Virus record (IMG/VR): IMGVR_UViG_3300037010_001702
Span: 1-64,000 of that record
Strand: one strand, 5' to 3'
Length of the DNA stretch: 64,000 nucleotides
Shown here in pieces: positions 6,248 to 21,643 of the stretch. Both the position numbers and the translations under genes were made by a program. The notes under the pieces are model-generated. The model ran no database searches and was not told the origin of the DNA. It saw nothing but the letters and a program-made list of their open reading frames with translations. The first letter of the stretch is position 1, and each line of letters begins with the position of its first letter.

Positions 6248-6270
6248 GTCATTAATCTCCTAAGTCATTA

Positions 6271-6322
6271 TATTTATGAAAACGTGCTACGATTGACATA
6301 TCTTACTCATCCCCAATAAATA
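6271..6322. promoter_or_regulatory. Back-to-back T4-type late promoters (ATAAATA on minus 6271-6277 and on plus 6316-6322)
   Basis: Divergent genes 6247(-) and 6348(+) each have ATAAATA about 25 nt upstream; T4 late consensus is TATAAATA. Confidence 0.65.
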
Positions 6323-6347
6323 TTGGAATTATTCAAAGGATTTTCTC

Positions 6348-7229
6348 GTGATCTCTTTCAAACAGTTTCTAATGGAGGGCGGCAAAGCAACTGCTAAGTT
6401 TGATGTGCAGCGAGCAGAGCAAGCTGATGTAAAGGCAGCTTTAGAATTTGTATCTAAAGTGCTTGGAATTCCATTTGACACGCTCAAAAATGATCTTCTA
6501 GGTTCAACAGAGCTTACTCTTCTAGGTAAAAAGAAAGACAGCGGAGATGTAGACATCGCTATGTCACTTAAGGATTCTGACGTCAACAAAATAAATGACG
6601 AGATGCTTAAGGCAACTGGTGGAGAGGGTGACTACAATGCTGGAACAAAGGTGGGTTCCTACGCAGTTCCAGTTAACGGAAAGAAGATTCAGGTCGACCT
6701 TATGTACGTGAACAATAAGGACTGGGCTAAGTTTGCGTATCACTCTGCAATTGGAAGAGGTTCAGTCTATCCAGGTTCCGTTCGCAATATCATCATGCTT
6801 ACGGCTCTTGCACATACACAAGAGCCTGGTAAAGATTTTGTTATGCGTGATGAAGATGGTAAAGCAATCATCAGAGCATCTAAGTCTGTCAAGCTAGACT
6901 CTGGAATGGAACGTCTATTCAAGATGGCTAAAGTCAATGCTAAGACGGGAAAATACAACAAGACCATTGAAACTGTAGCTCCTGAAGAAATAGAAGCTCA
7001 CCTTAAGTCACTTGGTAAGGATGTAAAGTTCTCCAAGGATAAGGATCACACTGATGTTCCAGATGAAGTGGCAGCATTTATCTTTGGCAAGAGTGTCAAA
7101 GCTGCTGATGTTATGACAGCAGAGAATGTTATCAAGCATATCAAGAAGCTTAAGAATTCTACTGAAATTATAGAAGCTGCACGTAAAGAGCTTGAACGTC
7201 TGAAGCTACCTATCCCGAAAGAACTATGA
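6348..7229 (+). CDS. Pol-beta-superfamily nucleotidyltransferase with capsid-targeting-like leader
   Basis: LLGST...SGDVDIA...IQVDLM (GS, DxD, third D); leader MISFKQFLME. Confidence 0.7.
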   Translation: MISFKQFLMEGGKATAKFDVQRAEQADVKAALEFVSKVLGIPFDTLKNDLLGSTELTLLGKKKDSGDVDIAMSLKDSDVNKINDEMLKATGGEGDYNAGTKVGSYAVPVNGKKIQVDLMYVNNKDWAKFAYHSAIGRGSVYPGSVRNIIMLTALAHTQEPGKDFVMRDEDGKAIIRASKSVKLDSGMERLFKMAKVNAKTGKYNKTIETVAPEEIEAHLKSLGKDVKFSKDKDHTDVPDEVAAFIFGKSVKAADVMTAENVIKHIKKLKNSTEIIEAARKELERLKLPIPKEL

Positions 7230-8310: not shown

Positions 8311-9060
8311 ATGACATTAACAACATCAGACATTCGCGACCTGTTTAAGGCTCGCTTAGCAGCAAAGCAATTCACGTCAATCAACCGTGAAGCTTCAATG
8401 ACCAACCTGGTTGGCAACACAACCATTGAAATTGTGGGCGCATCTTTTATTGCTGATGAAGATGCTATCTTCGGCGAAGTCAATTGGGATTACGTTGAAC
8501 GCGAAGAAGCTTGGTATAACTCTTTATCCTGTAATGTAAATGATTTTCCTGGCGGTGCCCCCGCCATCTGGAAAGCGGTTGCAGATAAGGACGGCTTTAT
8601 TAACAGCAATTATGGTGCTATTCTTTTTTCTGATTGGAACGGTAATCAATATGAAAACTGTGTAGCAGAACTAAAGTCTAATCCTGGCTCGCGAAGAGCT
8701 ACGGCGATTTACAATCGACCGTCAATGTGGAAAGATTACAATCTAAATGGGCGTAGTGATTTTCTATGCACTAATGCCGTCGGCTATCTTATTAGACAAG
8801 ATGAGCTTCACGCAGTTGTTCAAATGCGCAGTAATGATGCCTGGGCCGGGTATCGAAATGATAGAGCATGGCAGCAGCATATTTTAGAAAAGATGGCCGC
8901 AGAACTCTCTGTTGAGCCTGGTAATCTTTATTGGAATGTAACCTCACTCCATGTTTATGCACGGAATTATTATCTTGTAGATCACTATTCTAAAACTGGT
9001 AAATACCATATTTCTAAAGAAAAATACAAAGAACTTTATCCAGAGTCTGAATATATCTAA
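8311..9060 (+). CDS. 42: dCMP hydroxymethylase (T4 gp42 homologue)
   Basis: TIEIVGASFIADE, INSNYG, NPGSRR, RPSMW.DYN..G.SDFLCTN, MRSND..GYRND.AWQ, SLHVYAR.YYLVDH; colinear with T4 gp42, with the dCMP-specifying Asp. Confidence 0.95.
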   Translation: MTLTTSDIRDLFKARLAAKQFTSINREASMTNLVGNTTIEIVGASFIADEDAIFGEVNWDYVEREEAWYNSLSCNVNDFPGGAPAIWKAVADKDGFINSNYGAILFSDWNGNQYENCVAELKSNPGSRRATAIYNRPSMWKDYNLNGRSDFLCTNAVGYLIRQDELHAVVQMRSNDAWAGYRNDRAWQQHILEKMAAELSVEPGNLYWNVTSLHVYARNYYLVDHYSKTGKYHISKEKYKELYPESEYI

Positions 9061-9086
9061 TCACGTTTTCGCAGGTACTCGAGAAG

Positions 9087-9122
9087 AGTAGATTGAGACG
9101 AGTATTACCGTCTCAATCTACT
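9087..9122. repeat. Perfect 14-bp inverted repeat (hairpin)
   Basis: AGTAGATTGAGACG-agtattac-CGTCTCAATCTACT. Confidence 0.85.
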
Positions 9123-9330
9123 GATGAAGACTGCGTAGTTTATTGGATACATGATAGCACGTGTGTTCGTTCAATAACTGATGAGTATGTTGTCGTAACT
9201 ACGGTAAAGCGTTATTGAGCACATAAGCTAGAACATCTTAGGTCTGGTAGATTTCCAAAAGAGGCAGTCATGGATATTATTCGTGACGGTAATATTGCAA
9301 GATGTTACCTTTATAGGGATCATCGTGATT
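9123..9330 (+). pseudogene. Decayed GIY-YIG endonuclease
   Basis: Frame reads DEDCVVYWIHDSTC...DEYVVVTTVKRY*AHKLEHLRSGRF...; in-frame TGA at 9216. Confidence 0.5.
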
Positions 9331-9374
9331 GTTTAGCATCCGTTGGCATATTTAAACCTAAAAAAGAGAAAATA

Positions 9375-9572
9375 ATGGAACAAGTCTTCCTATCCCGTCG
9401 CAACCTTCTTTTGCTTCTTGATAAGCTTGACAAGAAGAAGCCCGGCGATCCTATTATTGCTGCATCTATTATCAAACATGACGGGCAAGGTGAGGATTTC
9501 AATCAAACAATTCCAATCATCTGCGTAACAGCAGTCGAAGATGAAATTTATTATGGAGCAAATCATGTCTGA
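9375..9572 (+). CDS. Hypothetical protein, tandem paralogue 1
   Basis: MEQVFLSRRNLLLLLDKLD...IIK.D...VTAVEDE.YY; start reassigned from 9270. Confidence 0.7.
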   Translation: MEQVFLSRRNLLLLLDKLDKKKPGDPIIAASIIKHDGQGEDFNQTIPIICVTAVEDEIYYGANHV

Positions 9573-9801
9573 TGTTGAACATGTCTTCCTATCTCGCCGT
9601 AATCTGTTGACCCTGCTTAACAAGCTAGACCGCAAAGCTACAGGTGATAATTCTACGCTTTGCACTATCATTAAGAATGATGATGCCCACACCAAGTATC
9701 CCCAATCTTGCCCAACAATAGTGGTTACTGCTATTGATGATGACGAGTATTACGACACTCGCGAAGCAGGCAAAGTTCACCCCCTGGATACACCAAAATG
9801 A
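9565..9801 (+). CDS. Hypothetical protein, tandem paralogue 2
   Basis: MSDVEHVFLSRRNLLTLLNKLD...IIK.D...VTAIDDDEYY; GGAG RBS. Confidence 0.75.
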   Translation: MSDVEHVFLSRRNLLTLLNKLDRKATGDNSTLCTIIKNDDAHTKYPQSCPTIVVTAIDDDEYYDTREAGKVHPLDTPK

Positions 9802-10397
9802 GATTAAAAGAACTCCGTGAAATGGCAGTCAGGAATCCTATGGAAATGAATTTGACGGATTCTCAGCTTGATGAATTTTCTAAACTGTTATCAACTTCAA
9901 CGGATGTAAAACAAATAAATGAAAATAAGACAGTGAAGATCAAGCACAGTGATGGTAAAATTTACTATTCTCTTTGGCTTAGTGAGATACTTGTTTCCTT
10001 TAGCGTATGTTCTTTCATAACTATTGCTGCTAAGAAATATCTTAGTATTTTATTTTCTCATACACTAAAGGAATTTCAGCGAAAAGGTTATTCCCAAGAA
10101 CTTATTTGGGAATTACATCTAATCATTGAAGAACCAATTTACATCGGCGGATCATTTACAACTGCAGGTGAAGGTTCTACAGTCAAACTAGCAAATTATC
10201 TTGAAAAGATTAGAAGTATAAAACTAAAGATGATCGATAATAAATCGGGCGAAATTTTGGATTATGATAATGGCCTATTAATGAAAAAACCAAAAATTGG
10301 GCTATTAATAGAAAGTGCTGGAATGTTTGAAGCATTTACTGATGCTGGCCTTGTAAAATTTTGGTTGAATGACAATATAGATTTTAGTGAGACATAG
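9798..10397 (+). CDS. GNAT-like acetyltransferase with capsid-targeting-like leader
   Basis: Acetyl-CoA motif EFQRKGYSQELI; leader MRLKELRE. Confidence 0.55.
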   Translation: MRLKELREMAVRNPMEMNLTDSQLDEFSKLLSTSTDVKQINENKTVKIKHSDGKIYYSLWLSEILVSFSVCSFITIAAKKYLSILFSHTLKEFQRKGYSQELIWELHLIIEEPIYIGGSFTTAGEGSTVKLANYLEKIRSIKLKMIDNKSGEILDYDNGLLMKKPKIGLLIESAGMFEAFTDAGLVKFWLNDNIDFSET

Positions 10398-10398
10398 A

Positions 10399-10560
10399 AT
10401 GCAAGTTAAAGATCCGCGTAAAGCGCACTTACACATCTCTCTCGTAAAGAGTGTCTTTCGTGTTTTAGCAGGTGCTGTTATAATGAGCCAGATGTTTTAT
10501 ACTGGTGGTTTGCTTATCATCATTGCTGAAGTTCTTGGCGTCTTGGAAGAGATTGTGTGA
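10399..10560 (+). CDS. Small membrane protein (53 aa; below ORF-track cutoff)
   Basis: MQVKDPRKAHLHISLVKSVFRVLAGAVIMSQMFYTGGLLIIIAEVLGVLEEIV. Confidence 0.65.
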   Translation: MQVKDPRKAHLHISLVKSVFRVLAGAVIMSQMFYTGGLLIIIAEVLGVLEEIV

Positions 10561-10864
10561 CCTGTGAATGTCAAGTCTGTAAAGATATTGCCCCGCAGGA
10601 AACGTATTATAATTAATGGAAATGAGGAACAACGCCTCCAAGTTTTCAGCGAGCCGTTTGACCGCATTGAAGATGCTGAGACAGATGTAACATACTATAA
10701 AGCTATTTTGCATGGCTAAATGGTAAAGCAATCTTAGAACACTGGCTGAAGCTGTTGATCTGCACAAACACATCCAAAGTAAAAATTGCTCGGGATAGTG
10801 ACAGAAAATGCAAGTGGTAGCCAAAGTCTGATGACTTTCAAATTTACAAAGTGGTACTTATTAA

Positions 10865-12607
10865 ATGAAATACGAAAAACAAGTTGCTAATGCCTTTGAG
10901 CGGTTAGGATTCGTTCCCCGTGCAGGGCAGATGGATGCCGTTAACCAGGTCTTGGTTGCATTTGTGGATGAGAACATGCAGAATGTTGTCTTGAATGCTT
11001 CTACTGGAACCGGTAAGTCTATCATCGGCGCTGCTGTTGCTGAGGCATTGATTGAGATTCGTGGTGGGTTGGATTCTGCTACTAAGGCTAGTATCTCATT
11101 GACGGCCACAAACGTCCTCGCAAAACAGTATTCCACTACCTTTGAAAAGCTGGGTGGTAATGGCAAGTACATACAGATTAAGGGAGCAGGCAATTACGGT
11201 TGTTCTGCTTTATCTACTGGTGATGAAGAAGAAAATGCAGAAGCTTGCGCATGGTATACGATGGTACAATCTGGTTCTGAGTTTGAAGAAGTAATTAACC
11301 AGCATTGCAATAAGTGTGAGTACCTGAAAGTTAAGAAGCTAAAGAACACTACTCGACATCTTACAACCAACTACTCCTATTTCTTTATTGATCGGATGTA
11401 CACTGGTAAGTTTGAAGACCGCGATCTACTTATCTGGGATGAAGCTCACCTTGTTAATGATCTCTTCTCTGAACATAATGCAATTCACTTCTCACAGAAG
11501 CGAGTACAACAAATGGCTCAGGAAATTGCTGATACAGTTCGCCTAACTGATTTGGAAATCTCTAAAATTCTGACTTCAGTGGCTGCAGACTGTAGCAAGA
11601 AGGATAAGATTAACCAAAGCAACTATGAAGCTTACCTTCGTGCCATGCATAAAGTTTATTCTTATGCTAAGGAACAGGGAACCATTGCTGCTGAAAAAGC
11701 ATTACGCTCAAATCAAAATGGGCAGTACTCCAAGCTGACACGCTTCACGAAGAAGTATGAAGGACTTGCTTGTAAGATTGATGACCTCTTCAACTATAAC
11801 TACGAGCATGTGTTCGAGTATAAGGAAGAAGATAACTCAGTTACGGTGAAGCCTGTATTTGTTGGTTCAATGACAGAAGCTTTGCAGTGCAGTCCGCATA
11901 ATCTCTTTATGTCAGCTACTGTAACCGATCAGTTCATGATTAAGACTTTGCACTTGGATGTTGCGAAGACAAAGTTCATTAAGCTTGAGCCTACATTCCC
12001 TAAAGAGAATAAGGAAGTTGTGTTCTTTGATCCGCTATCTTTGAGTTACACCTCTCTTCAGAATCCCGACACAGTGAAAGCACTTCGAAAGAATGTAGCA
12101 CGGGTAGTTAGAAAGCACATCGACGATAATGAACGTGGTATCATTCTTACGCCATCATTTAAGCTACAAGCCGAATTGGTTGCAGAAATTACTCCTCTTG
12201 CTAGAGCAGGCAGGATGAAATTGTTCGAGCATGTACAGGGCACTAAGCTTGAAGCTACTCTAACAGCATTCAAAGAATATAAGGGAGAACTCCCTGCTAT
12301 TCTTGTATCACCTTCTATGTTTGAAGGTATTGACTTACCTGGAGACCTATCACGGTTTCAGATTTTAGTTAAGGCTCCATTCCCATCTCTGGGTGATAAG
12401 AGAATGAAGTTCATTCTAGACCACCACAAAGACATTTACGAGATAATTACGATCATGAAATGCGTGCAAGGCGCTGGCCGAAGTGTAAGATCGATAGATG
12501 ATCACGCAGTTACATATATCCTAGATTTAAATGGGCAAAGAATTTGGGGATCACCAGCAAACATATGGAAAAACGAATTCAATACCCGATATACTAAATT
12601 CTTATGA
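10865..12607 (+). CDS. DinG/Rad3-family SF2 helicase
   Basis: Q-motif PRAGQ, ASTGTGKS, DEAH, MSAT, EGIDLPGD, PFPS, QGAGRSVRS; Cys cluster. Confidence 0.9.
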   Translation: MKYEKQVANAFERLGFVPRAGQMDAVNQVLVAFVDENMQNVVLNASTGTGKSIIGAAVAEALIEIRGGLDSATKASISLTATNVLAKQYSTTFEKLGGNGKYIQIKGAGNYGCSALSTGDEEENAEACAWYTMVQSGSEFEEVINQHCNKCEYLKVKKLKNTTRHLTTNYSYFFIDRMYTGKFEDRDLLIWDEAHLVNDLFSEHNAIHFSQKRVQQMAQEIADTVRLTDLEISKILTSVAADCSKKDKINQSNYEAYLRAMHKVYSYAKEQGTIAAEKALRSNQNGQYSKLTRFTKKYEGLACKIDDLFNYNYEHVFEYKEEDNSVTVKPVFVGSMTEALQCSPHNLFMSATVTDQFMIKTLHLDVAKTKFIKLEPTFPKENKEVVFFDPLSLSYTSLQNPDTVKALRKNVARVVRKHIDDNERGIILTPSFKLQAELVAEITPLARAGRMKLFEHVQGTKLEATLTAFKEYKGELPAILVSPSMFEGIDLPGDLSRFQILVKAPFPSLGDKRMKFILDHHKDIYEIITIMKCVQGAGRSVRSIDDHAVTYILDLNGQRIWGSPANIWKNEFNTRYTKFL

Positions 12608-12840
12608 ACATCGAACAACTAAAAGAATATTTTGCAGAACAAATCAGCCGTGGTATCACTAATCTATTCTTCATGACACAGGAAGTTCATCCTGCTAATA
12701 AAGATGAATGGTGCGTGAGGGTTATCCCAGCGGCTGAGCTCGCAGAACTGGTTCCACATCTGCAGGATTATACATACTACCGTAATACGAATCACTGCCC
12801 ACATTTTTACAAGTGTCAAGTCAGGTTGAGCTTTACATAG
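12604..12840 (+). CDS. Hypothetical protein
   Basis: Coupled ORF; N-terminus resembles 30174..30371 (F..QI..G.T.L.F). Confidence 0.6.
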   Translation: MNIEQLKEYFAEQISRGITNLFFMTQEVHPANKDEWCVRVIPAAELAELVPHLQDYTYYRNTNHCPHFYKCQVRLSFT

Positions 12841-12888
12841 GCAAGTTGCGTGTTATAATAAATTTTATCTTATTTTAAAGGAGACGTA

Positions 12889-13203
12889 ATGTCCAAAAAG
12901 TTGAAGTATAAAGAAGACAAGTGTATCTATCGTTTGAACCTCACTCATACTGAAGTTGAACTAATTGCGGCCTTAGTGCAGCAGGTTCGTCTTGGCAGTG
13001 GTGACATCTATAAAGAAGTTGCATTTAATCTGTGCGAGTTATTTGGTAGCACAGAAGACTTTAATTGTTCTGTTTTGGATTCACACATCACTGTTGGATC
13101 TTCCATTGATAAGGGAGGGTATACGACTATTGAAGTCGAGGAAGCTGCATTCCAAGGTATGGGATGCCAAGGTTGCTGCTCAGGATGCAGTTGTGGCGAT
13201 TGA
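12889..13203 (+). CDS. Hypothetical protein with Cys-rich tail
   Basis: AGGAG RBS; upstream TTTACA-N17-TATAAT-like promoter; C-term CQGCCSGCSC. Confidence 0.7.
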   Translation: MSKKLKYKEDKCIYRLNLTHTEVELIAALVQQVRLGSGDIYKEVAFNLCELFGSTEDFNCSVLDSHITVGSSIDKGGYTTIEVEEAAFQGMGCQGCCSGCSCGD

Positions 13204-13257
13204 TAGTTATCATAACCTTCTATAAATTGACCCATCTAAAATAGATAGAGTAAAAGT

Positions 13258-13830
13258 ATGACAATAAATGCTATCCTCGTGGAGGGTTTGGACAGATTGG
13301 GCAAGAGTACATTAGTAGAAAGTATTCAACAAGAGCTCGGATATTTCCAAGTCATTCATTTTGGGAAGCCACAACACTTGAAGTTCTATGAGCAAAAAGA
13401 CAACAATGGATTTGTTTCGACTGGGGAGAGCGCGTATCTTTACCAGCACGCCTCATTCGACAACATGTTCAGAATCCTTAATTCAACAGCAAGAGTTATC
13501 TTTGATCGAGCACATCTCGGAGAATGCGTCTACTCACCAATTTATCGCAACTATTCTGGTGATTACGTGTATGATCTTGAGTGCTATCATGGCATGGATC
13601 ATAATGACTCTACCAAACTCATACTCTTGGTAGAGAATATGTCTATCTCTGAACACTTTGTTGACGATGGTTTATCCTTCGACATTACAAAGCGTCAGCA
13701 AGAGCAAGACCTTTTCGAAGAAGCGTTTCATAAATCAATCATTAAGAACAAACAGATCATCTGTGTAACAGACCCTGCAACGGGCAAGTTCCGCTCTAAA
13801 GAAGACATTCTAAAAGAAGCTTTACAATGA
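13258..13830 (+). CDS. Thymidylate-kinase-like dNMP kinase (candidate hm-dCMP kinase)
   Basis: VEGLDRLGKST P-loop; IFDRAHLGE.VY. Confidence 0.8.
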   Translation: MTINAILVEGLDRLGKSTLVESIQQELGYFQVIHFGKPQHLKFYEQKDNNGFVSTGESAYLYQHASFDNMFRILNSTARVIFDRAHLGECVYSPIYRNYSGDYVYDLECYHGMDHNDSTKLILLVENMSISEHFVDDGLSFDITKRQQEQDLFEEAFHKSIIKNKQIICVTDPATGKFRSKEDILKEALQ

Positions 13831-14438
13831 AATTGAATGAAATTTTACGTGTAGCTTCTTTATCCGATTTAGAATCAAAAATTAAACTCAGCCAAGAACA
13901 GATTAATAATGCTAAAAGTTTAGGCTTTATGGCACATAGTTTTGAAGTGTTTGAAATTAATGGTGAAGTCGGGGGACTGAAAGTATTTTATGCGAAAAAG
14001 GAAGAGAATATTATTGGTCAGTTAGCTCTTGAAAAAACTGAAATTTGCAAAATTAGTGGGTATATCTGTAGACGTTCATATATTATTCCATCAGAAGAAA
14101 AAAAAGGATATGGTTCAGATTTTTATGTCTTCATAAGAAAATATCTCAAGTCACCAATGTTTGCCATGTTCAGTGATGAATCGCAAACACCTGATGGAAT
14201 AAACCTGTGGAAATCTTTAAGCAAAAGATTTGATGTTAAAGTGTTAAACATTCAGACTGGCGAAATAAAATCCCGAAAAGATGTTAATGATGATATAATA
14301 TACACTAATGATGCTGACAAATCAGCAGATTTTATGCTAATGATTGAATCTGCCAAAGCATTTGCTATCCCCACACAGTCGTATATTAAGGGAAGCATCT
14401 TAACACCATATGCATTATTTGAAGATGGAGATTATTAA
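13827..14438 (+). CDS. GNAT-like acetyltransferase with leader
   Basis: EEKKGYGSDFY...FSDESQTPDGINLWKSL; leader MKLNEIL; resembles 9798. Confidence 0.55.
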   Translation: MKLNEILRVASLSDLESKIKLSQEQINNAKSLGFMAHSFEVFEINGEVGGLKVFYAKKEENIIGQLALEKTEICKISGYICRRSYIIPSEEKKGYGSDFYVFIRKYLKSPMFAMFSDESQTPDGINLWKSLSKRFDVKVLNIQTGEIKSRKDVNDDIIYTNDADKSADFMLMIESAKAFAIPTQSYIKGSILTPYALFEDGDY

Positions 14439-15560
14439 ATGAAAGTTGCAGTCATCAAGTTGGGATCGCGTATCTCCTTCAATGCTAATGATACGTCCGG
14501 TGCCAATGGAGAAGCTAGAAGCATCTGTAAGATGCTTAAAGGTGGAGGAGCCGAGGTTCATATCTACACGAAGATTCTTAAGAAAGATAAACTAGTAGAA
14601 GATTACCAGTGGCATGATCTGTCTGAGCATATTCTTGACCACCCCACAGAAGATATTCTTGTTATTCTGAATGGTAATGTTAACTTCTTTGGTGGTGCTG
14701 AAGATCGCGAACAGCTTTTGAACTATGCAATCATCAATGCATTTGAAGGCCCTATCTTTTATGTATACTGCGACCCTGAACTTACATTGAAGCAAGTATG
14801 GCCATCAGTTGCTAAGAAGCCATGGGCTGGCAATTGGTCTCAAGGCACACTTGATATCGTTCGTAAGGACATCAATTATCTGTGTCAGCCCTTCGACACT
14901 GAGATGATTCGAAATGATCTGAAGAAGCATGAAATCATTCCACAGAATATCATTCATTTCCCGTTCGAACAGTTTCCCTGTTTGAATGAACGGCTCCCAT
15001 TCAACCCAGCTCCAGAAGTTGATCTATCTTACGGCGGAACAATGCGGGGCGGTAAGCGTGTTAAGAAGATGGCTAAGTTTTACTTTGGTCATCCAGATGA
15101 AATCTCTGTAGAGATGTTTGGTAAGATTGAAGCTAAAGACTTTGAAGACAAATATGTTATGGGTCTACGCCATCCTACTTACACTGGTCCAGTTAAATAC
15201 GATGACATGCTTCCTAAGATGAATAAAGCAATGGCGCATTGTGTTATCGGAGATCCTTATTACGAGAAGATTAATGACATTCCGCAGCGCTTGTGGGAGA
15301 GCGTTAATTCCAATGTGGTTACGTTTATTGATTATGAAATGGATAAAATGCGTAGAGTGTGGGCAGCAGATAAAGTGCTAGGCGATTTTCTTTATGTAAA
15401 AGATAGACAAGAACTTTCTGAGAAAATACTATTACTAAAGTCTGATAATGAACTTCGCAAGCAAATACTGTCAGATCAGTTTACAGCACTTAACTTTAAT
15501 CCTGAAGAATATTGCGCATCATTTGTCAATCTGATTAAAAGCAATATCAGAATCCCGTAA
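14439..15560 (+). CDS. bgt: DNA beta-glucosyltransferase homologue (GT-B, acts on hmC)
   Basis: NVNFFGG, YCD (catalytic Asp position), QVWPSV.KKPWA, FPFEQ, YGGTMRGGKR, IGD..Y, RLWE; colinear with T4 BGT. Confidence 0.9.
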   Translation: MKVAVIKLGSRISFNANDTSGANGEARSICKMLKGGGAEVHIYTKILKKDKLVEDYQWHDLSEHILDHPTEDILVILNGNVNFFGGAEDREQLLNYAIINAFEGPIFYVYCDPELTLKQVWPSVAKKPWAGNWSQGTLDIVRKDINYLCQPFDTEMIRNDLKKHEIIPQNIIHFPFEQFPCLNERLPFNPAPEVDLSYGGTMRGGKRVKKMAKFYFGHPDEISVEMFGKIEAKDFEDKYVMGLRHPTYTGPVKYDDMLPKMNKAMAHCVIGDPYYEKINDIPQRLWESVNSNVVTFIDYEMDKMRRVWAADKVLGDFLYVKDRQELSEKILLLKSDNELRKQILSDQFTALNFNPEEYCASFVNLIKSNIRIP

Positions 15561-15581
15561 ATAAAGCGAGCCCGGAAAATT

Positions 15582-15785
15582 ATGGTAGTGCATTTAAAGG
15601 TTGGCGTTTATTGTGGATTTATGGAAATCTATACTGATGATAGAATATTTGCTACAAATATTATGGGTGTAGATTGCACTGTAGATAGAGATAAGATGTG
15701 TGTAGAATTTCCCTCTCTAGGTTATTCAAAGCGTATTATTGAAGATACAGGGTTCTCGATATTATTTGAAGCAATAAAATTGTGA
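15582..15785 (+). CDS. Hypothetical protein
   Basis: ORF after TAAATA at 15558. Confidence 0.4.
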   Translation: MVVHLKVGVYCGFMEIYTDDRIFATNIMGVDCTVDRDKMCVEFPSLGYSKRIIEDTGFSILFEAIKL

Positions 15786-15804
15786 TACTCTTAAAGGTAG
15801 TATA

Positions 15805-15990
15805 ATGGAACTTATCAGCAAAACCACTGTAATAGATGATGTGACATATGAACCTATTCACACACTAACATTTAAAGTTAGTCAAACTCTCCTTGATGAT
15901 TTAGCTCTCATCAAGGAGATGTATGGAGCGAATGAGGCAGCTACTATTATTGGGACCGAGCTTTTAGAACAAATTCTTAAGAGGAAATAA
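15805..15990 (+). CDS. Hypothetical protein
   Basis: ORF coupled to next gene. Confidence 0.55.
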   Translation: MELISKTTVIDDVTYEPIHTLTFKVSQTLLDDLALIKEMYGANEAATIIGTELLEQILKRK

Positions 15991-15991
15991 A

Positions 15992-17902
15992 ATGAACATT
16001 GTTATCTTAGCTGGTGGCACCGGCAGTATTGCTATCCAGACAGCGCTCTATAACTCTCTAGAACAAATCGGGGATAAAGGAGATGTTGATATAAAAATCC
16101 TAGTGAATGCATATGATGCAGGTTTGAGTACTGGTGCCGTTAGACGAGTAATGAATGGTGACATCCTTGGTCCATCTGATGTTCGTAAGAACCAGACCAC
16201 ACGGCTTAAGCTTGAGCATCCTGTATCTCCGTGGCATAAATTTCTTGACATTCGATTCTCAAAACCTGCGACCGAAGTAGAAGCATTCTGTATTCAGCAG
16301 ATTAATACACTTCAAAAGGAACTAGAAGATTATGAACTTCCATCTAATCTTAGTGTTATTGACAAGGCGGTCGGGTCTTACTTCAATGCGCCACTTGCTA
16401 CTAAGATTGACTACTATGATTTCTCTTTAGCGAATATTATCTATGCAGGCCTTGCTCGCATGCATAAGAACTCTCTTCGTGCTGCAGCTCGTGAGATGGC
16501 AAAATTGCTTGGTATCAAAGACAATGTTCTATTGAATGATGACACCTCTTTGTTCCTTGGGGCTATTACTAAGTCTGGTATCCGCGTGACAGATGAGGGA
16601 GATATTGTTTCATGGGGAAGAATGGACGATCCATTCGTAGACATCTTTTTTACTGATTCAAGAGGTAATGAATCGAAACCAGTGTTGTGCAATGAAGCTC
16701 ACCATGCAATTATGGATGCTGATCTGATTATCCTTTCATCTGGAACACAATGGTCATCATTGATTCCTACTTATGCATCTTCTGGATTTAAATCAGCCAT
16801 TGACCAGTGCAATGCGAAGTTGCTAATGGTTATGAATCGAATTCCTGATAAGGATTCTCCTGGCCAGTCTGCATCTGACATCATCAACATTCTTGTGCCA
16901 AACTATTTCCCAGCAGGTCGCTTGCATGTTCTATGTGATAATACTGCTCATGAACTTATGCAGGGTTCTAACATTGACTTCAATATCCAATCTACTGTAG
17001 CAGGCATTTATAGCTATGACTTGTCTGATTCCGAATCCAACAAGCATAGTCCTAGAGCTCTAGCAAAGTCTATTGCATCCATTTACTGGAACATCGAATC
17101 AAGTAGCCAAGTGCAGAACACCACATACGTTTTTGATTATGATGACACCCTTGTTGGTCGTGGTAATGCATACAAGAGAGCATCACAATACAATGTCAAT
17201 GGGTTAAGCGCACTAAACGAAAAGATTAATGTTGCTGTCTGCACTGGTAACGGTATCAAAGCTGTCAAACTAACCCGCAAAGCTGAAATCATGGGCAATG
17301 GTTTGACGCCAATGAGATTTGATAAACCTATGCTGCGAGTATTTGCAGATGGTGGTATTAATGAATATGCTTACAGCACTAACTGCGAAGACAGCAATGA
17401 TGGAGTTTGTGCTCTTGCAATGAAACATCTTGATCCTTCTAAAGTGCTAAGCAAAACAGAACTGTCATTAGTCATGATGCGATTGAAGGAAGCAGGAATT
17501 CCTGTTGCTAAAATTGAAAATCGTGGAGACACTGTCATTGCCATCAAACCGATTGATGCTGAGTACCGTGACTCGATTACACGATTACTTGAACTTACCT
17601 TCCTTTCTCAGAATGGAAATGAAAAGAACTCATGGGCTATTACACCTTCAGGTAGAACGACTATTGAAATTTCTAAATCTGGAATCTCGAAAGCTCGTGC
17701 TATTGAGGAATTGCTAGCATCAACATTTGAACCAATTGTATTCATCGGTGACGAGCTTGATTACGGAAATGACTTCTGTATTAAAGAACTCGCACAGAAG
17801 AATATTCAGCTGTCCTGTTTGAAAGTGCGATCACCTATTCACACCGCATGGCTGATCAACACGCTACTTGATAACTTACAAGTTATAATGTTTAATAAAT
17901 GA
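15992..17902 (+). CDS. CofD/YvcK(UPF0052)-family domain fused to HAD-IIB phosphatase/phosphomutase
   Basis: N: IVILAGGTGS, NAYDAGLSTG, GPSDVR, ADLIILSSGT..SSLIP; C: FDYDDTL, CTGN, GRTTIEI..SGISK, FIGDELDYGND. Confidence 0.85.
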   Translation: MNIVILAGGTGSIAIQTALYNSLEQIGDKGDVDIKILVNAYDAGLSTGAVRRVMNGDILGPSDVRKNQTTRLKLEHPVSPWHKFLDIRFSKPATEVEAFCIQQINTLQKELEDYELPSNLSVIDKAVGSYFNAPLATKIDYYDFSLANIIYAGLARMHKNSLRAAAREMAKLLGIKDNVLLNDDTSLFLGAITKSGIRVTDEGDIVSWGRMDDPFVDIFFTDSRGNESKPVLCNEAHHAIMDADLIILSSGTQWSSLIPTYASSGFKSAIDQCNAKLLMVMNRIPDKDSPGQSASDIINILVPNYFPAGRLHVLCDNTAHELMQGSNIDFNIQSTVAGIYSYDLSDSESNKHSPRALAKSIASIYWNIESSSQVQNTTYVFDYDDTLVGRGNAYKRASQYNVNGLSALNEKINVAVCTGNGIKAVKLTRKAEIMGNGLTPMRFDKPMLRVFADGGINEYAYSTNCEDSNDGVCALAMKHLDPSKVLSKTELSLVMMRLKEAGIPVAKIENRGDTVIAIKPIDAEYRDSITRLLELTFLSQNGNEKNSWAITPSGRTTIEISKSGISKARAIEELLASTFEPIVFIGDELDYGNDFCIKELAQKNIQLSCLKVRSPIHTAWLINTLLDNLQVIMFNK

Positions 17903-18717
17903 AACAAGACCTCTATATTATTGCTGCAGGTAAAGGCTCTCGAATGGGAGGGAGCCTTCCTAAAGCATTAGTTCCAATTAATGGTACAGAACCATGTTTA
18001 ACAACAACTCTAAAGCAGATTGGAAATAAATTTCTAAATGTATTCTTAGTTGTTAATACTGACATCATTGAGATTTGGGAAAAGTATCTCCGCACGCAAG
18101 TTGATTATACCGAGTATCCACTTGACTATGCAAGGAATGTTACCCTAGTCCCCATTAAATCAGGATTGGGCGATGGCCATGCTGTTATGTCTGCATTAGA
18201 ATCAGTTGTTGCAGAATTAGGCAAGACGAAATCAACACCTAAGTTCTCAGATGACATCGTTGTTTGCTGGGGTGATGTATTCTTTCCCCATGCAGAACTT
18301 ATCGATGAGTTGCTATCTAGACCACTAAAGAATGGATTGTTCCCTGTTGTTAGAGAAGATAATCCTTACGTGACCTTGCTTACGAATTCTGATATGCAAT
18401 GCATATCAGCAGATTTTTCTAAGTATGGTGAGAACCATCCTACTGGATTCCATGATCAATCCATTTTTAGATTCAATAGAAATCTATTGAGCCAAACCCT
18501 TTATACTCTTCATGACGCCTACTGGAAGAATGGTCGCTATATGACACCTGGTGGTGAGCTCTCACTGCTTCACACCTTCCATTATTTGTATAACACAGAA
18601 TCACCCGCATCTGTTTATGAAACAGATTACCCAACGCTAAGCTTCAATACACCTGAAGAAGTAGCAGATATTCAAAAGGAAATTAACAAAAAATGGCAGA
18701 ACAATCAGTCCTCGTGA
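17899..18717 (+). CDS. Sugar-phosphate nucleotidyltransferase (GlmU/RmlA-like NTP transferase)
   Basis: IIAAGKGSRMGGSLPKALVPING, GLGDGHAV, VCWGDV, SFNTPEE. Confidence 0.85.
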   Translation: MKQDLYIIAAGKGSRMGGSLPKALVPINGTEPCLTTTLKQIGNKFLNVFLVVNTDIIEIWEKYLRTQVDYTEYPLDYARNVTLVPIKSGLGDGHAVMSALESVVAELGKTKSTPKFSDDIVVCWGDVFFPHAELIDELLSRPLKNGLFPVVREDNPYVTLLTNSDMQCISADFSKYGENHPTGFHDQSIFRFNRNLLSQTLYTLHDAYWKNGRYMTPGGELSLLHTFHYLYNTESPASVYETDYPTLSFNTPEEVADIQKEINKKWQNNQSS

Positions 18718-19355
18718 CCCTTACTGCACCATCATGCAGTGGAAAGAGTCACCTTTTAAACTACATTCGCAATGAGCAAAAGCTTCCATGCATAGTGTCA
18801 ACTACAACTAGACCTCCTCGCCCAGGTGAAGTTGACGGCGTTGACTACTTCTTTATCTCTGAAGAACAATCAAAAGACATTGAGGCAGCAGATGGGTTCG
18901 CAGAGCTTGCTATCTATAATGGTGTACGCTATGGTGTTACTAAATCGGAATTCAAGACGAAGCTTGATACGGGTTTAACATTCCTAATCGTTGAACCTTC
19001 TGGTATTGACCATTATGTAAAGCCAGCTCTCGATGCTGGGGCAATACATCTAAAATACTTCATCACTGTTCCACAAACAGTTCGTCTTGAACGATTCAAA
19101 AAACGGCTAGATGCCGATCTGGCTGAGGTTATGGATCGTCACACCCCCACCATTGAGGATGAACTTAATAAGAAGAAACAAATTCAATCATGTGTTGAAA
19201 TGGGGTTGAAACGATATAAAGCCATGCTGACTGTTGAACCGGGATGGATTGACTTAGTGGCATGGGACGGAGTATTGTCAGGATTAGATTCGCCAAATCA
19301 TAACATGTCAGTAATCCTTGGTAAGATTCAGCAAATGAATCTGAATAGCAACTGA
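18693..19355 (+). CDS. gmk: Guanylate kinase
   Basis: APSCSGKS, VSTTTRPPRPGEVDGVDYFF, YG. Confidence 0.85.
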   Translation: MAEQSVLVTLTAPSCSGKSHLLNYIRNEQKLPCIVSTTTRPPRPGEVDGVDYFFISEEQSKDIEAADGFAELAIYNGVRYGVTKSEFKTKLDTGLTFLIVEPSGIDHYVKPALDAGAIHLKYFITVPQTVRLERFKKRLDADLAEVMDRHTPTIEDELNKKKQIQSCVEMGLKRYKAMLTVEPGWIDLVAWDGVLSGLDSPNHNMSVILGKIQQMNLNSN

Positions 19356-19389
19356 ACGGATCGAGATTAACTACAAAGTAAATACCTTT

Positions 19390-19836
19390 ATGAAAATTAC
19401 AGACAACACTCCTATGAGCGAAACTACTCCTACTTTCTGGCCCGCCGATATTGAAGATATGCACACCAAGTTTGGTGTTAACAAGGTCGTCGATACTCTT
19501 ACTAATGAACAACTCAAAACTTATCTTAAGTTCCGCTTGGATATGGTTCAAGAAGAAGTTACAGAAGCCCATGCTGCTTTTGAAGCAGCAGATGCTGATG
19601 GAATTGTTGATGCATTAATCGACGACATCGTCTTTGTAATCGGAACTCTTAATGTATTGGGTGTCGATGCTTATAAAGCATGGAACATTGTCCATGCAAA
19701 GAACATGGAAAAGTCTCCAGGTGTTAAAGAAGGTCGTCCTAACCCTTACGGATTCCCTGACTTGATTAAGCCGGCTGGATGGACCGCTCCTTCTCACCTT
19801 GACAACCTCGGCTTGCTTAGCAAGATTTTCAAATGA
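19390..19836 (+). CDS. MazG/PRA-PH-like dNTP pyrophosphohydrolase (candidate dCTPase/dUTPase)
   Basis: QEEVTE...DALID...NMEK...GRPNP.G.PDLIKP.GW.AP. Confidence 0.75.
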   Translation: MKITDNTPMSETTPTFWPADIEDMHTKFGVNKVVDTLTNEQLKTYLKFRLDMVQEEVTEAHAAFEAADADGIVDALIDDIVFVIGTLNVLGVDAYKAWNIVHAKNMEKSPGVKEGRPNPYGFPDLIKPAGWTAPSHLDNLGLLSKIFK

Positions 19837-20668: not shown

Positions 20669-21643
20669 ATGAAACTACTTGTACTTGCAAACGCGCACCA
20701 TGAACTTATCAAGGAAGCTACGGTTGGAACTGCCAGCGTAGCCCTAGCCATGGAGAAGATGATCAAGTTTATCCAACGAAAGATGGATGAAAAGCTCATC
20801 AGGATTCCTGGAATTGAGCATTTTCACAATTCCACTGACAGCGGGTATGGTATTCGCTATGTATTTTCAGGTACAACGCGCTGTCTTCGCTTCAACTGGG
20901 GTTCTGAAGCTTCAGCTGGTAAGACTAGTGAGATTCACTCCATCGACATCTTCAATGGTAAGTCTGCTGATCCAACGTTCAGCATTCACTGCAAGGGTAT
21001 TTCCTTCGCGCAATCACTGCCAGCTCTTGTAGCAATTCTTCATTCTCCAACAATTGGTCATGTTCGTGCCTTCCCAGTTAGCCCTGTTGAAGCTTTGTCT
21101 GAGTCAGTTATCATGGAAGTTGCGCGGGATGCATTCTCGCCTGAAGCTGCTCTCAATGACTTCCTCGGAAAACTCGCAGCAGGCAAGACATTCACCCGTT
21201 CTGAATTCATTGGTTCCTACCACATTATCAATGCCGGTATCTTTGACACAGTCTTCAGGGACTTCAATGACAGGTTTCAAATTGATGCCAGGAGAGTTTC
21301 GCTAAAGCCAGGTTCGAAGATCGACTCTCTTAAGGACTCTATTCTTTCAAAGGCAGGAGTCATCACTGTAACCCAAGGTGGTACAGATGAATCCTTCATG
21401 AAGACCAAGCAGGAAGAGCAAGTTGAAAAGGATACCGCTGAACGCATTCCATTTGGTGACACCCTTGAACACTTGGAAGGTCTCGTAACAGGTACCATAA
21501 AGGGGGCATTCAACGCTCTCTTTGTTGCTGGTAAGGGTGGATCGTTTTCAGGTTCAACTCTTGTAAATGTTATGGTTAATAATTCATCAATAAATTTAAA
21601 TGATAATCATCAAACCGAAAACAAGATTGCCAATCATAATTAA
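20669..21643 (+). CDS. AAA-ATPase N-terminal half (291-aa N-extein) plus 33-aa N-intein
   Basis: Ends NALFVAGKGG|SFSGSTLVNVMV...; TAAATA at 20628. Confidence 0.8.
   Translation: MKLLVLANAHHELIKEATVGTASVALAMEKMIKFIQRKMDEKLIRIPGIEHFHNSTDSGYGIRYVFSGTTRCLRFNWGSEASAGKTSEIHSIDIFNGKSADPTFSIHCKGISFAQSLPALVAILHSPTIGHVRAFPVSPVEALSESVIMEVARDAFSPEAALNDFLGKLAAGKTFTRSEFIGSYHIINAGIFDTVFRDFNDRFQIDARRVSLKPGSKIDSLKDSILSKAGVITVTQGGTDESFMKTKQEEQVEKDTAERIPFGDTLEHLEGLVTGTIKGAFNALFVAGKGGSFSGSTLVNVMVNNSSINLNDNHQTENKIANHN
21542..21640 (+). mobile_element. Split intein N-fragment (Ser1)
   Basis: SFSGSTLVNV matches intein block A (C/S-F-x-G-x-T-x-V), directly after half a Walker A motif. Confidence 0.75.

Follow-up and report, generated by a model that had tools for sequence, protein, structure and literature searches.

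In bacteriophage T4, 5-hydroxymethylcytosine (hmC) DNA is made with gp42 dCMP hydroxymethylase, gp1 dNMP kinase, gp56 dCTPase and a beta-glucosyltransferase (BGT), the glucose being taken from host UDP-glucose. Phage-encoded synthesis of the sugar donor for DNA glycosylation is already published for NDP-arabinose and UDP-galactofuranose, on 5-hydroxycytosine [RB69, DLP3, HY126 Afh genes, RL38JI; PMC13326640]. Relatives of single parts are described outside DNA modification: CofC/CofD (FbiD/FbiA) of coenzyme F420 synthesis, where the established CofD/FbiA chemistry is phosphodiester formation from a GDP-linked donor [PMC7253369]; YvcK/GlmR of Firmicutes, which bind UDP-sugars [PMC5482804] and of which GlmR is reported to be an accessory UDP-GlcNAc uridylyltransferase [PMC10128056]; and the HAD-IIB phosphomannomutases (PMM) and alpha-phosphoglucomutases (alpha-PGM). 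We analysed a jumbo phage stretch of 64,000 nucleotides (the window; positions 1 to 64,000 of IMG/VR record IMGVR_UViG_3300037010_001702), in which hmC genes and a T4-like BGT are followed by a widely conserved three-enzyme cassette that most likely builds its own activated sugar, so that the phage DNA may carry a sugar (or sugar-phosphate) different from the glucose of T4. No paper describing this cassette was found.

Genes of the locus

The genes named in the initial annotation (gp42, a dNMP kinase, BGT, a CofD/YvcK-HAD fusion, a sugar-1-phosphate nucleotidyltransferase, guanylate kinase and a MazG-like pyrophosphatase) were all present as intact open reading frames on the + strand, and the observation is confirmed. 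Most are translationally coupled, as read directly from the sequence: ATGA overlap at 13827; TAA followed at once by ATG at 14436-14441; TAA, one base, then ATG at 15988-15994; ATGA overlap at 17899; 25-nt overlap at 18693-18717. The arrangement is far beyond chance; the same cassette recurs in dozens of phage contigs whose fusion proteins are only 28-50% identical.

The product of 8311-9060 (+) has a thymidylate-synthase (TS) fold (Pfam 1.9e-14) and is an orthologue of T4 gp42, which makes 5-hydroxymethyl-dCMP (PDB 1B5E, E 7.7e-71; about 49% identity to the T4 enzyme). The catalytic Cys is kept in SDFLCTN; the Asp in RSND (ThyA D169 position) is kept, so that the protein does not carry the Asn signature of the 5-hydroxy-dCMP synthases [PMC13326640]; the Asp in YRND (ThyA N177 position) indicates a cytosine substrate. 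All TS homologues in cassette loci keep Cys and both Asp residues and are therefore of the dCMP hydroxymethylase type.

A thymidylate-kinase-like P-loop dNMP kinase is encoded at 13258-13830 (+), on weak matches only (Pfam PF02223 1.6e-4, below cut-off; PHROG 761 5.5e-10); it is conserved together with the TS homologue in 19 of 28 non-redundant cassette loci, and its role as hm-dCMP kinase is inferred. The 203-aa ORF coupled between the kinase and BGT (13827-14438, +) gave no Pfam or PHROG hit and no homologue in the other loci, and is not a core part; the ESM Atlas (feature score 0.96, TM 0.65-0.70 to phage GNAT clusters) offers only a lead that it is possibly a divergent GNAT acetyltransferase.

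The BGT homologue at 14439-15560 (+) is a GT-B protein of GT63 (PF09198 4.6e-17; PHROG 7922 8.6e-51; PDB 1BGT 5.2e-35), predicted to put a sugar on hmC in DNA. Equivalents of T4 Asp100, Ser189/Arg191/Arg195, Tyr261, Arg269 and Glu272, comprising catalytic and UDP-phosphate-binding residues, are all kept; equivalents of Glu22, Asn66 and Asn70 are invariant in the clade. The protein is 28% identical to T4 BGT but 45% to the cassette-linked BGTs of Ralstonia phage RsoM2USA and LR756500. Between BGT and the fusion gene lie two small ORFs of 67 and 61 aa (15582-15990, +), the latter with a 53% identical counterpart in phage locus L008; this slot holds a SAM methyltransferase in loci L024, L025 and L042, and one lies nearby in L026.

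The fusion gene spans 15992-17902 (+). Residues 1-366 (15992-17089) form a CofD/YvcK-like domain (PF01933 1.5e-19; TIGR01826 1.1e-17), matched by Foldseek to YvcK structures at TMt 0.72-0.80 and to FbiA/CofD at about 0.6; about 75 residues are invariant across 16 sequences, including GGTGS and D42 and D63, which align with the YvcK Asp residues. It is inferred to be a catalytic phosphotransferase-type domain acting on or with an NDP-linked substrate. Residues 367-636 (17090-17902) form a HAD-IIB domain whose profile gave alpha-PGM 4BND (3.4e-5) and PMM2 (0.01-0.03) as best PDB hits, ahead of trehalose-P phosphatases; Foldseek gave 4BND at 5.7e-11, then PMM1/2; structural neighbours in the Atlas are PMM families. 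The HAD motifs (DxDxT, T, K and GDx5GND; D382-x-D384-x-T386, T418, K567 and G586-D-E-x3-G-N-D594) are invariant, as are three cap arginines. By fold it would be a hexose-6-P to hexose-1-P mutase or a hexose-bisphosphate phosphatase.

The gene at 17899-18717 (+) encodes a predicted hexose-1-phosphate nucleotidylyltransferase, which would make an NDP-hexose (PF12804 2e-9; AF2 model, pLDDT 89.6). Foldseek matched the model to the GlmU pyrophosphorylase domain, ST0452, HddC, RmlA and UGPase at TMq 0.64-0.78 over the full length; the signature AAGxGxR...PK, WGD and SFN are invariant. The guanylate kinase at 18693-19355 (+) (PF00625 2.2e-17; TIGR03263 1.6e-22, below the equivalog cut-off) has GMP-site motifs that align with E. 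coli Gmk. It is an accessory rather than a core member, present in 14 of 28 lineages, and lies next to the fusion gene in two different gene orders (the window clade, and loci L032/L003). The MazG/PRA-PH protein at 19390-19836 (+) (PF01503 1.1e-8; PHROG 671 1.6e-20) is conserved in the near clade only; its role as a dCTPase, a functional analogue of T4 gp56, is inferred.

Distribution of the cassette

Co-occurrence of the fusion with BGT, which had been proposed beforehand as a test, was strongly positive in phages. This BGT type lies just upstream of the fusion in 26 of 28 non-redundant phage loci; the transferase is adjacent in 26, or 27 counting RsoM2USA, where it lies across the record ends; in the reverse direction, 40 of 43 loci with this BGT clade carry the fusion. 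Locus L040 shows no transferase within the part of the contig examined.

The two full-length loci of this BGT type without the fusion have other donor pathways beside BGT. Locus L109 has an arabinose-type pathway, a SIS isomerase plus an NTP-transferase/APH-kinase protein; the latter has full-length homologues in 368 records, mostly T4-like phages of enterobacteria and Acinetobacter, the group shown to make NDP-arabinose [PMC13326640]. Locus L113 has a UDP-galactopyranose mutase. Locus L031 has the fusion but lacks BGT and TS, and carries a TET-associated glycosyltransferase (TAGT) 1.8 kb upstream; locus L033 has the module with only a C5 DNA methylase nearby, no glycosyltransferase being detected among the ORFs tested.

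Occurrence independent of hmC genes, named in the initial annotation among the findings that would refute its interpretation, was found in bacteria, where 30 genome loci carry the fusion and transferase pair without BGT or a TS homologue, in polysaccharide clusters beside GT2 (14 loci), GT8, GT4 and GT1 enzymes. This informs rather than refutes the link to DNA, as it shows the pair to be a general glycan-building module that works beside glycosyltransferases of several families. Single-chain fusions were also found: CofD-HAD-transferase (protein P0081), CofD+NTP_transf_3 in giant viruses, and CofD+GT2 in bacteria.

Interpretation and alternatives

We favour, at a probability of about 0.56, a portable module that turns a hexose phosphate into an NDP-hexose to feed the DNA glycosyltransferase. 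It is supported by the intact active sites, the synteny conserved at deep divergence, the other donor pathways in the same slot in L109 and L113, the pairing of the module with glycosyltransferases of several families, the folds of the HAD domain and the transferase, and the single-chain fusions. Gene identities, conserved sites and co-occurrence are shown by the analysis; production of hm-dCMP by the gp42 orthologue, its channelling into DNA in place of dCMP by the kinase and the MazG-type pyrophosphatase, and transfer of a sugar from an NDP-sugar to the hydroxyl of hmC by the BGT homologue are supported by homology; the donor-synthesis steps are inferred from fold and context, without biochemical data for any member. 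In this view, the HAD domain would convert a host hexose-6-phosphate into the hexose-1-phosphate, either as a mutase or as the phosphatase of a 1,6-bisphosphate; the transferase would condense it with an NTP; and BGT would use the resulting NDP-hexose. The CofD/YvcK-like domain, more conserved than the mutase to which it is fused, would be catalytic and handle the same sugar-phosphate or NDP-sugar pool, most likely in a phosphotransfer step of donor synthesis, functionally like the anomeric kinase of the kinase-HAD phosphatase-nucleotidyltransferase pathways for heptose and arabinose; an accessory nucleotidyltransferase or sensor role like GlmR is the alternative. However, no kinase activity is known in the CofD/YvcK family, and if the HAD domain is a true mutase, donor synthesis needs no third activity, which leaves the most conserved domain without a job; L033, with the module but no glycosyltransferase detected among the ORFs tested, and L040, with no transferase in the contig part examined, also count against this reading. 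We consider it somewhat more likely than not that the sugar is not plain host-type UDP-glucose, as T4-type BGTs need no such module and sister BGTs without it carry rare-sugar pathways in the same place; the UDP- and catalytic-site residues of BGT are nevertheless the same as in T4, and the closest solved relatives of both module enzymes act on gluco-configured sugars, so that the product could be ordinary UDP-glucose.

The interpretation in the initial annotation is thus supported in part. Its gene identifications and its idea of a BGT with its own donor-related module hold, and the mutase-like HAD domain and the genuine hexose-1-phosphate nucleotidylyltransferase fold favour its first model, in which a HAD mutase and an NTP transferase supply a non-glucose NDP-sugar to BGT; neither its claim that the base differs from glucosyl-hmC of T4 nor a function of the CofD/YvcK domain is shown by the data. 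Its second model, a CofC/CofD-like relay, is weakened in that the transferase is not CofC/MobA-like in fold, and survives in modified form, as transfer of a hexose-1-phosphate from the NDP-hexose.

That modified form is the strongest alternative, although we regard it as unlikely. A hydroxyl, of the glucose that BGT put on hmC or of hmC itself, would attack the sugar-linked phosphate of the NDP-hexose made by the HAD mutase and the transferase, at the CofD/YvcK-like domain, which would use it as CofD uses its GDP-linked donor; a hexose-1-phosphate would be attached through a phosphodiester with release of NMP, the guanylate kinase would recycle GMP, and the DNA would carry a negatively charged phospho-sugar adduct not described for cytosine. 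Every domain is then given a job matching the established chemistry of its family; the CofD domain is the most conserved part, with Asp42 and Asp63 aligned to the YvcK aspartates; fusions of CofD to the transferase and to a GT2 fit consecutive steps; YvcK proteins bind UDP-sugars; and the guanylate kinase adjoins the fusion gene in two gene orders, CofD-type reactions releasing GMP. On the other hand, the module partners with glycosyltransferases of at least five unrelated families, on DNA, polysaccharide and possibly small molecules, which a shared donor explains more simply than a shared acceptor; the same slot in sister phages is filled by plain donor-synthesis genes; the domain is closer to YvcK (TMt 0.8) than to CofD/FbiA (0.6); the guanylate kinase is absent from half of the lineages; and no sugar-1-phosphate transferase is known in this family.

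Slightly less likely still is self-sufficiency only, in which the module makes ordinary UDP-glucose, or another sugar nucleotide the host already has, so that glucosylation does not depend on host pgm/galU; the DNA would carry plain beta-glucosyl-hmC, and the YvcK-like domain would be a UDP-sugar sensor or accessory uridylyltransferase, as proposed for GlmR. This is supported by the best solved relatives (the glucose-specific alpha-PGM 4BND; Glc/GlcNAc-1-P nucleotidylyltransferases), by the T4-like donor-site residues of BGT, and by the link of GlmR to UDP-GlcNAc supply. Against it, T4-like phages with BGT never carry the module (123 phage records match this BGT, but only two match the fusion); RsoM2USA grows on Ralstonia, which is expected to make UDP-glucose; sister BGTs sit beside rare-sugar pathways; some cassettes include a SAM methyltransferase between BGT and the fusion; and in bacteria the module sits among specialised sugar pathways of polysaccharide loci.

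That the module has nothing to do with DNA and is an auxiliary metabolic module that alters a host or virion glycan (for example cell-surface polysaccharide, for superinfection exclusion), merely lying in a nucleotide-metabolism region, fits the bacterial loci and L033 but is very unlikely, as it is immediately adjacent, often translationally coupled, to DNA glycosyltransferases of two unrelated families (BGT and TAGT) across divergent phage lineages, with agreement in the reverse direction.

Comparison with described systems

Compared with the T4 pathway, the gp42 orthologue has the same active-site residues, BGT keeps the catalytic Asp and the UDP-phosphate arginines, and a kinase and an NTP pyrophosphatase are present; T4, however, has no mutase, nucleotidyltransferase or CofD/YvcK gene, the present BGT belongs to a separate clade, the kinase is thymidylate-kinase-like rather than gp1-like, and the pyrophosphatase is MazG-like. 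With the F420 step the locus shares a nucleotidyltransferase gene next to a PF01933 protein, a chemistry, here inferred, centred on an NDP-linked donor, and metal-binding aspartates; it has no F420 genes, its transferase is a full sugar-1-phosphate enzyme rather than CofC/MobA-sized, and its PF01933 domain is nearer to YvcK than to CofD and fused to a HAD mutase-like domain.

YvcK/GlmR is the closest structural relative of the N-terminal domain (TMt up to 0.80), with shared motifs GGTG, xDxGxSxG, PxDxR and SxGxxxSSxxP and, in both, a functional link to hexose-nucleotide supply, which for the phage domain is inferred; there is no yvcJ/whiA operon context, the phage domain is fused to a HAD domain and always paired with a separate nucleotidyltransferase and a glycosyltransferase (but see L033 and L040), and it falls far below the TIGR01826 cut-off (64 against 196 bits). 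Eukaryote-type PMM and Lactococcus alpha-PGM give the best matches for the C-terminal domain and share the DxDxT nucleophile motif, the long-loop GDx(5-6)GND motif IV, the spacing of which also supports the assignment, and arginines in the cap; sequence identity is only about 17%, motif IV is one residue shorter, the phage domain is fused to CofD/YvcK, and its mutase or bisphosphatase activity is inferred.

With the arabinose and galactofuranose modules [PMC13326640] the locus shares sugar-nucleotide synthesis genes clustered with a TS homologue and DNA glycosyltransferases, and the logic, here inferred, of sugar phosphate, then HAD enzyme, then nucleotidyltransferase; the BGT-clade relatives L109 and L113 carry exactly these module types in the same position. 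Here the base precursor is hmC rather than 5-hydroxycytosine (Asp, not Asn, at the ThyA-169 position); there is no SIS isomerase, no APH-type kinase and no GLF; the HAD is of the PMM/alpha-PGM type rather than the GmhB type; and a CofD/YvcK-like domain is present, which no described DNA-modification pathway contains.

The hydroxymethylcytosine genes and their neighbours

Between 8311 and 19836 all long ORFs lie on the + strand, and the gene order and start/stop overlaps described in the initial annotation are present as it described them; its observation is confirmed. The product of 8311-9060 is a true orthologue of the T4 gp42 dCMP hydroxymethylase (PDB 1B5E, E 7.7e-71 over residues 31-241; about 49% identity to T4 and its relatives by tblastn). 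The catalytic Cys (in SDFLCTN), the Asp at the ThyA-N177 position that selects cytosine (in YRND) and an Asp at the E. coli ThyA-D169 position (in RSND) all align with T4. An Asn at this last position marks the 5-hydroxy-dCMP synthases of RB69-like phages (PMC13326640, from which these criteria were taken); we considered such a synthase and rejected it on this Asp/Asn diagnostic, and the enzyme should therefore make hmC, not 5-hydroxycytosine. A DinG/XPD-like helicase (10865-12607, +; ResIII, DEAD_2, Helicase_C_2; PHROG 2488) lies between gp42 and a thymidylate-kinase-like kinase at 13258-13830, for which the match is weak; the helicase is conserved in that place in 14 of 28 cassette loci. A 203-aa ORF (13827-14438, +) is translationally coupled between the kinase and the BGT gene; it has no Pfam or PHROG hit, looks like a divergent GNAT acetyltransferase in the ESM Atlas (feature score 0.96, TM 0.65-0.70) and is absent from related cassettes, one of which, phage locus L008, has a SIR2-family gene in the same position.

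The product of 14439-15560 is a BGT homologue (GT63; PF09198, 4.6e-17, 62.7 bits against a cut-off of 27; PDB 1BGT, 5.2e-35). The catalytic Asp100 and the UDP-binding Arg191, Arg195, Tyr261, Arg269 and Glu272 of the T4 enzyme are aligned and kept, with Ser189 replaced by Thr; these positions are invariant in the clade. It is followed by a 636-residue fusion of a CofD/YvcK domain and a HAD-IIB domain (15992-17902), a nucleotidyltransferase (17899-18717), a putative guanylate kinase (18693-19355) and a MazG-type pyrophosphatase (19390-19836). The putative guanylate kinase scores 63.8 against 25.2 in Pfam but only 80 against a cut-off of 160 for TIGR03263; its motif STTTRPPRPGEVDGVDYFF aligns with E. 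coli Gmk.

The window is identical to three IMG/VR contigs, and the same fusion protein is encoded on a contig of 290 kb. Just downstream of the nucleotide-metabolism block, ORFs with DUF559/HNH-like and NUMOD3 motifs (21600-22655 and 23765-24595, +) are probably homing endonucleases; 38721-40667 and 40708-42087 encode the two topoisomerase II subunits, and two very large proteins of 1352 and 1235 aa (2189-6247, -; 52577-56284, +) have repeated matches to head-decoration and tail-fibre PHROGs. This is a jumbo phage without a close cultured relative, as megablast of the whole region against 50,697 phage records found nothing. A scan for promoters and terminators was no better than shuffled sequence (34 against 35.6, and 11 against 8.4) and says nothing about operon limits.

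Distribution of the fusion and the nucleotidyltransferase

Of the 50,697 deposited phage records only two encode the fusion, Ralstonia jumbo phage RsoM2USA and an uncultured 462-kb phage; in both, the BGT homologue, the transferase, the thymidylate-synthase (TS) homologue and the kinase are clustered with it. The deposited linear record of RsoM2USA (MG752970) was opened inside the cassette, so that ORF1 (the fusion) and ORF486 (the transferase) are neighbours only across the record ends; both are annotated as hypothetical, and of the cassette the published annotation names only ORF2, the BGT homologue. ORF5 of this phage, next to the kinase, is amidinotransferase/DDAH-like. A pattern scan of IMG/VR with an alignment of the fusion gave 37 loci, which we reduced to 28 non-redundant phage loci whose fusion proteins are 28-100% identical to that of the window. 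All 28 carry the fusion; 26 have the transferase adjacent, and in RsoM2USA it lies across the record ends; 26 have the BGT homologue just upstream; 19 have the TS homologue and 19 the kinase; 14 have the putative guanylate kinase. All 19 TS homologues have the hydroxymethylase-type residues. Four phage lineages have a SAM-dependent methyltransferase (Methyltransf_23/31), which hints at a methylated sugar in those phages; it lies between the BGT and fusion genes in loci L024 (8970-9992), L025 (approximately 9192-10001) and L042 (8781-9587), and nearby in L026 (approximately 5998-6950).

In the reverse direction, a scan with an alignment of this BGT clade gave 43 loci, of which 40 carry the fusion within 10 kb. 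One of the three exceptions is a 5.9-kb contig that ends 1 kb after BGT; the other two are informative. L109 (7049-11191) has, directly upstream of BGT, a SIS isomerase and a bifunctional NTP-transferase/APH-kinase protein of the RB69 type, the latter with full-length homologues in 368 records, mostly T4-like phages of enterobacteria and Acinetobacter; this is the architecture described for the phage NDP-arabinose pathway. L113 (10001-13339) has a UDP-galactopyranose mutase two genes downstream of BGT, the enzyme proposed for RL38JI. In this BGT clade the place beside the transferase is thus regularly occupied by a sugar-donor pathway, which in most lineages is the fusion plus nucleotidyltransferase, and BGT-family enzymes therefore probably transfer sugars other than glucose in some phages.

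Conversely, L031 (7247-8218), a close relative of phage locus L030 that has lost BGT, TS and the kinase, keeps the module and has a TET-associated glycosyltransferase (PF20691, 8.9e-26) 1.8 kb upstream. In L033 (5768-6979) we looked for a TET dioxygenase or a glycosyltransferase near the module; among the ORFs tested, only a C5 cytosine DNA methylase, 3 kb upstream, and a Lar-like restriction-alleviation gene turned up. The module therefore goes with DNA glycosylation whichever transferase family is used, and may also serve the post-replicative 5mC-to-5hmC route.

The fusion family is large. At least 387 full-length relatives were found in the metagenome protein search, many on contigs of 100-370 kb, and a scan of one genome per species found 30 loci, mostly in gut Firmicutes MAGs but also in SAR86, a Steroidobacteraceae MAG and others. 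None of these 30 has BGT or a TS homologue, but most have the transferase adjacent. Independence from hmC genes had been set beforehand as a condition that would count against the link, and it is fulfilled in bacteria; what it shows is that the pair is a general glycan-building module. The bacterial neighbours are polysaccharide-locus genes: a GT2 directly downstream in 14 loci, and elsewhere GT8, GT4, a Wzx flippase, an initiating sugar transferase, epimerases and other sugar-nucleotide pathways. A GmhA-like SIS gene near the module in four Firmicutes loci was considered as the mark of a heptose pathway using the module, but those loci have their own HddC- and GmhB-like genes, so that no inference is possible. 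In the Steroidobacteraceae contig (loci L010/L044, JBJMWM010000041.1), and beside a single-chain CofD-HAD-transferase protein (P0081), the partner is a GT1 of the EryCIII type; a profile comparison of the BGT clade with the GT1 enzyme beside the bacterial module showed no sequence relationship. The Steroidobacteraceae fusion and transferase are 49% and 60% identical to those of the window and lie also beside sulfotransferases and a MatE exporter, which suggests recent exchange between phage and bacterium and use on a non-DNA acceptor. A maximum-likelihood tree, rooted at the midpoint only, interleaves phage and bacterial sequences with at least four changes of label; the Steroidobacteraceae protein nests inside the window's own phage clade, and the Firmicutes clade nests among phage lineages. 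Among ESM Atlas neighbours, CofD-family proteins are fused to NTP_transf_3 in giant viruses (Nucleocytoviricota), to GT2 in Pseudomonadota and to HAD_2 in Planctomycetota; the CofD/YvcK-HAD-transferase association is much wider than phages.

Predicted activities and a working model

The four HAD motifs I-IV of this domain of the fusion (D382-Y-D384-D-T386, T418, K567 and G586-D-E...G-N-D594) are invariant in 16 sequences. A phmmer search of PDB with this domain alone gave only noise, but a profile of the domain hits the Lactococcus alpha-phosphoglucomutase 4BND (3.4e-5) and PMM2 (0.012-0.03) ahead of trehalose-P phosphatases (above 0.5). The AlphaFold model of the fusion (pLDDT 86, pTM 0.87) gives the same order by Foldseek (4BND at 5.7e-11, then mostly PMMs), the ESM Atlas neighbours are PMM families, and the long-loop motif IV, GDx5GND, is of the PMM type in the profile alignments. 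Foldseek of the fusion model against BFVD gave one weak trehalose-phosphatase hit and nothing for the CofD domain. For the nucleotidyltransferase, the best PDB sequence hit (3F1C) at first suggested an IspD/TarI- or CofC-like alcohol-phosphate enzyme; this was rejected because its model (pLDDT 89.6) matches the GlmU pyrophosphorylase domain, ST0452, HddC, RmlA and UDP-glucose pyrophosphorylase over the full length (TMq 0.64-0.78). The GxGxRxnPK signature, WGD and SFN are invariant, and the metal-binding Asp and full two-lobed fold of such enzymes are present. By predicted fold and signature it is a hexose-1-phosphate nucleotidylyltransferase, not a CofC-like enzyme. As to its NTP and sugar phosphate, no NCBIfam equivalog is reached, all scores being far below the cut-offs.

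The N-terminal domain of the fusion belongs to PF01933 (70.8 bits against a cut-off of 30) but scores 64.5 bits against a cut-off of 196 for TIGR01826. It matches YvcK structures (TMt 0.72-0.80) better than FbiA/CofD (about 0.6), and only YvcK-type PDB sequences are hit by phmmer; there are no F420 genes in the window, and its neighbours are BGT and a nucleotidyltransferase instead of the yvcJ-yvcK-whiA operon. It is the most conserved part of the protein, with about 75 invariant residues including the glycine-rich loop and two aspartates, D42 and D63. With regard to the conserved Asp pair and Asn implicated in GlmR activity (D40, D41, N198), sequence alignment alone places D42 of the fusion at the YvcK Asp of 'ADN/ADD', preceded however by Tyr, and D63 at 'PGD'. 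The degree of conservation of the domain argues, by inference, for catalysis rather than mere binding.

A mutase-type HAD plus a hexose-1-phosphate nucleotidylyltransferase would be a complete route from a central hexose phosphate to an NDP-hexose, and a Leloir glycosyltransferase generally stands next to the pair (L033 excepted, among the ORFs tested there). We favour a module for donor supply, with a probability of about 0.56, since the partner transferases belong to many families, the module occupies the same slot as arabinose or galactofuranose donor genes in sister phages, and the domains are fused to one another in some lineages. Homology, conserved motifs and co-occurrence are what the analysis shows; synthesis of 5-hydroxymethyl-dCMP, the donor and acceptor of the BGT homologue, the mutase activity and sugar specificity of the HAD domain, the NTP and sugar phosphate of the transferase, and any catalysis by the CofD/YvcK domain are inferred. 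The proposal of the initial annotation, that BGT is accompanied by its own donor-synthesis genes and that a cytosine modification different from that of T4 results, is in our view partly supported: the accompanying donor-related module is borne out, whereas the different modification is inferred only.

The weak point is the CofD/YvcK domain. Known chemistry in the family is attack of an alcohol on the distal phosphate of a GDP-linked donor with release of GMP (FbiA), together with one report of uridylyltransferase activity (GlmR). Within the donor-supply model the domain could be the phosphotransfer step that, in the heptose and arabinose pathways, is done by an anomeric kinase before a HAD phosphatase and a nucleotidyltransferase; it could also be a GlmR-like accessory enzyme or sensor. 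An alternative that we consider unlikely, but that is not excluded, is that the domain is a new kind of soluble phosphoglycosyl transferase, which would take the NDP-hexose made by its fused mutase and the neighbouring nucleotidylyltransferase and attach hexose-1-phosphate through a phosphodiester to glucosyl-hmC (or to hmC) in DNA, and to sugars of bacterial polysaccharides. This would give every domain a job in keeping with its family and would explain why a putative guanylate kinase lies next to the fusion in two different gene orders, but it fits less well with the variety of partner transferases; if true, it would be a new class of cytosine hypermodification carrying a phosphate, and the first defined group-transfer reaction for the enigmatic YvcK/GlmR branch. 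Plain UDP-glucose self-supply, with no new base, seems less likely still.

Significance and relation to known pathways

Glycosylated cytosines decide whether phage DNA survives restriction enzymes, type IV nucleases and CRISPR, and they limit phage engineering and sequencing. The cassette is shared by dozens of mostly very large uncultured phages and by one cultured phage, RsoM2USA; working it out would identify the sugar, or sugar-phosphate, on the DNA of a whole group of jumbo phages, would assign a reaction to a CofD/YvcK-type domain, a family whose role in Gram-positive cell-wall metabolism is still disputed, and would at the same time annotate the module in gut Firmicutes polysaccharide loci. 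Literature and full-text searches for CofD with hydroxymethylcytosine, with bacteriophage and DNA modification, or with polysaccharide clusters, which did not extend to the 2013 comparative-genomics paper on DNA base glycosylation systems, found no description of the cassette.

The hmC branch is the T4 pathway. Phage-encoded sugar-nucleotide synthesis for DNA glycosylation was published in 2026 for arabinose and proposed for galactofuranose (PMC13326640), and the present module would add a fourth type after the host-dependent glucose, arabinose and galactofuranose types. What is new is the enzyme set, namely a HAD domain of predicted PMM type fused to a CofD/YvcK domain, plus a transferase of predicted GlmU/RmlA type, and its breadth.
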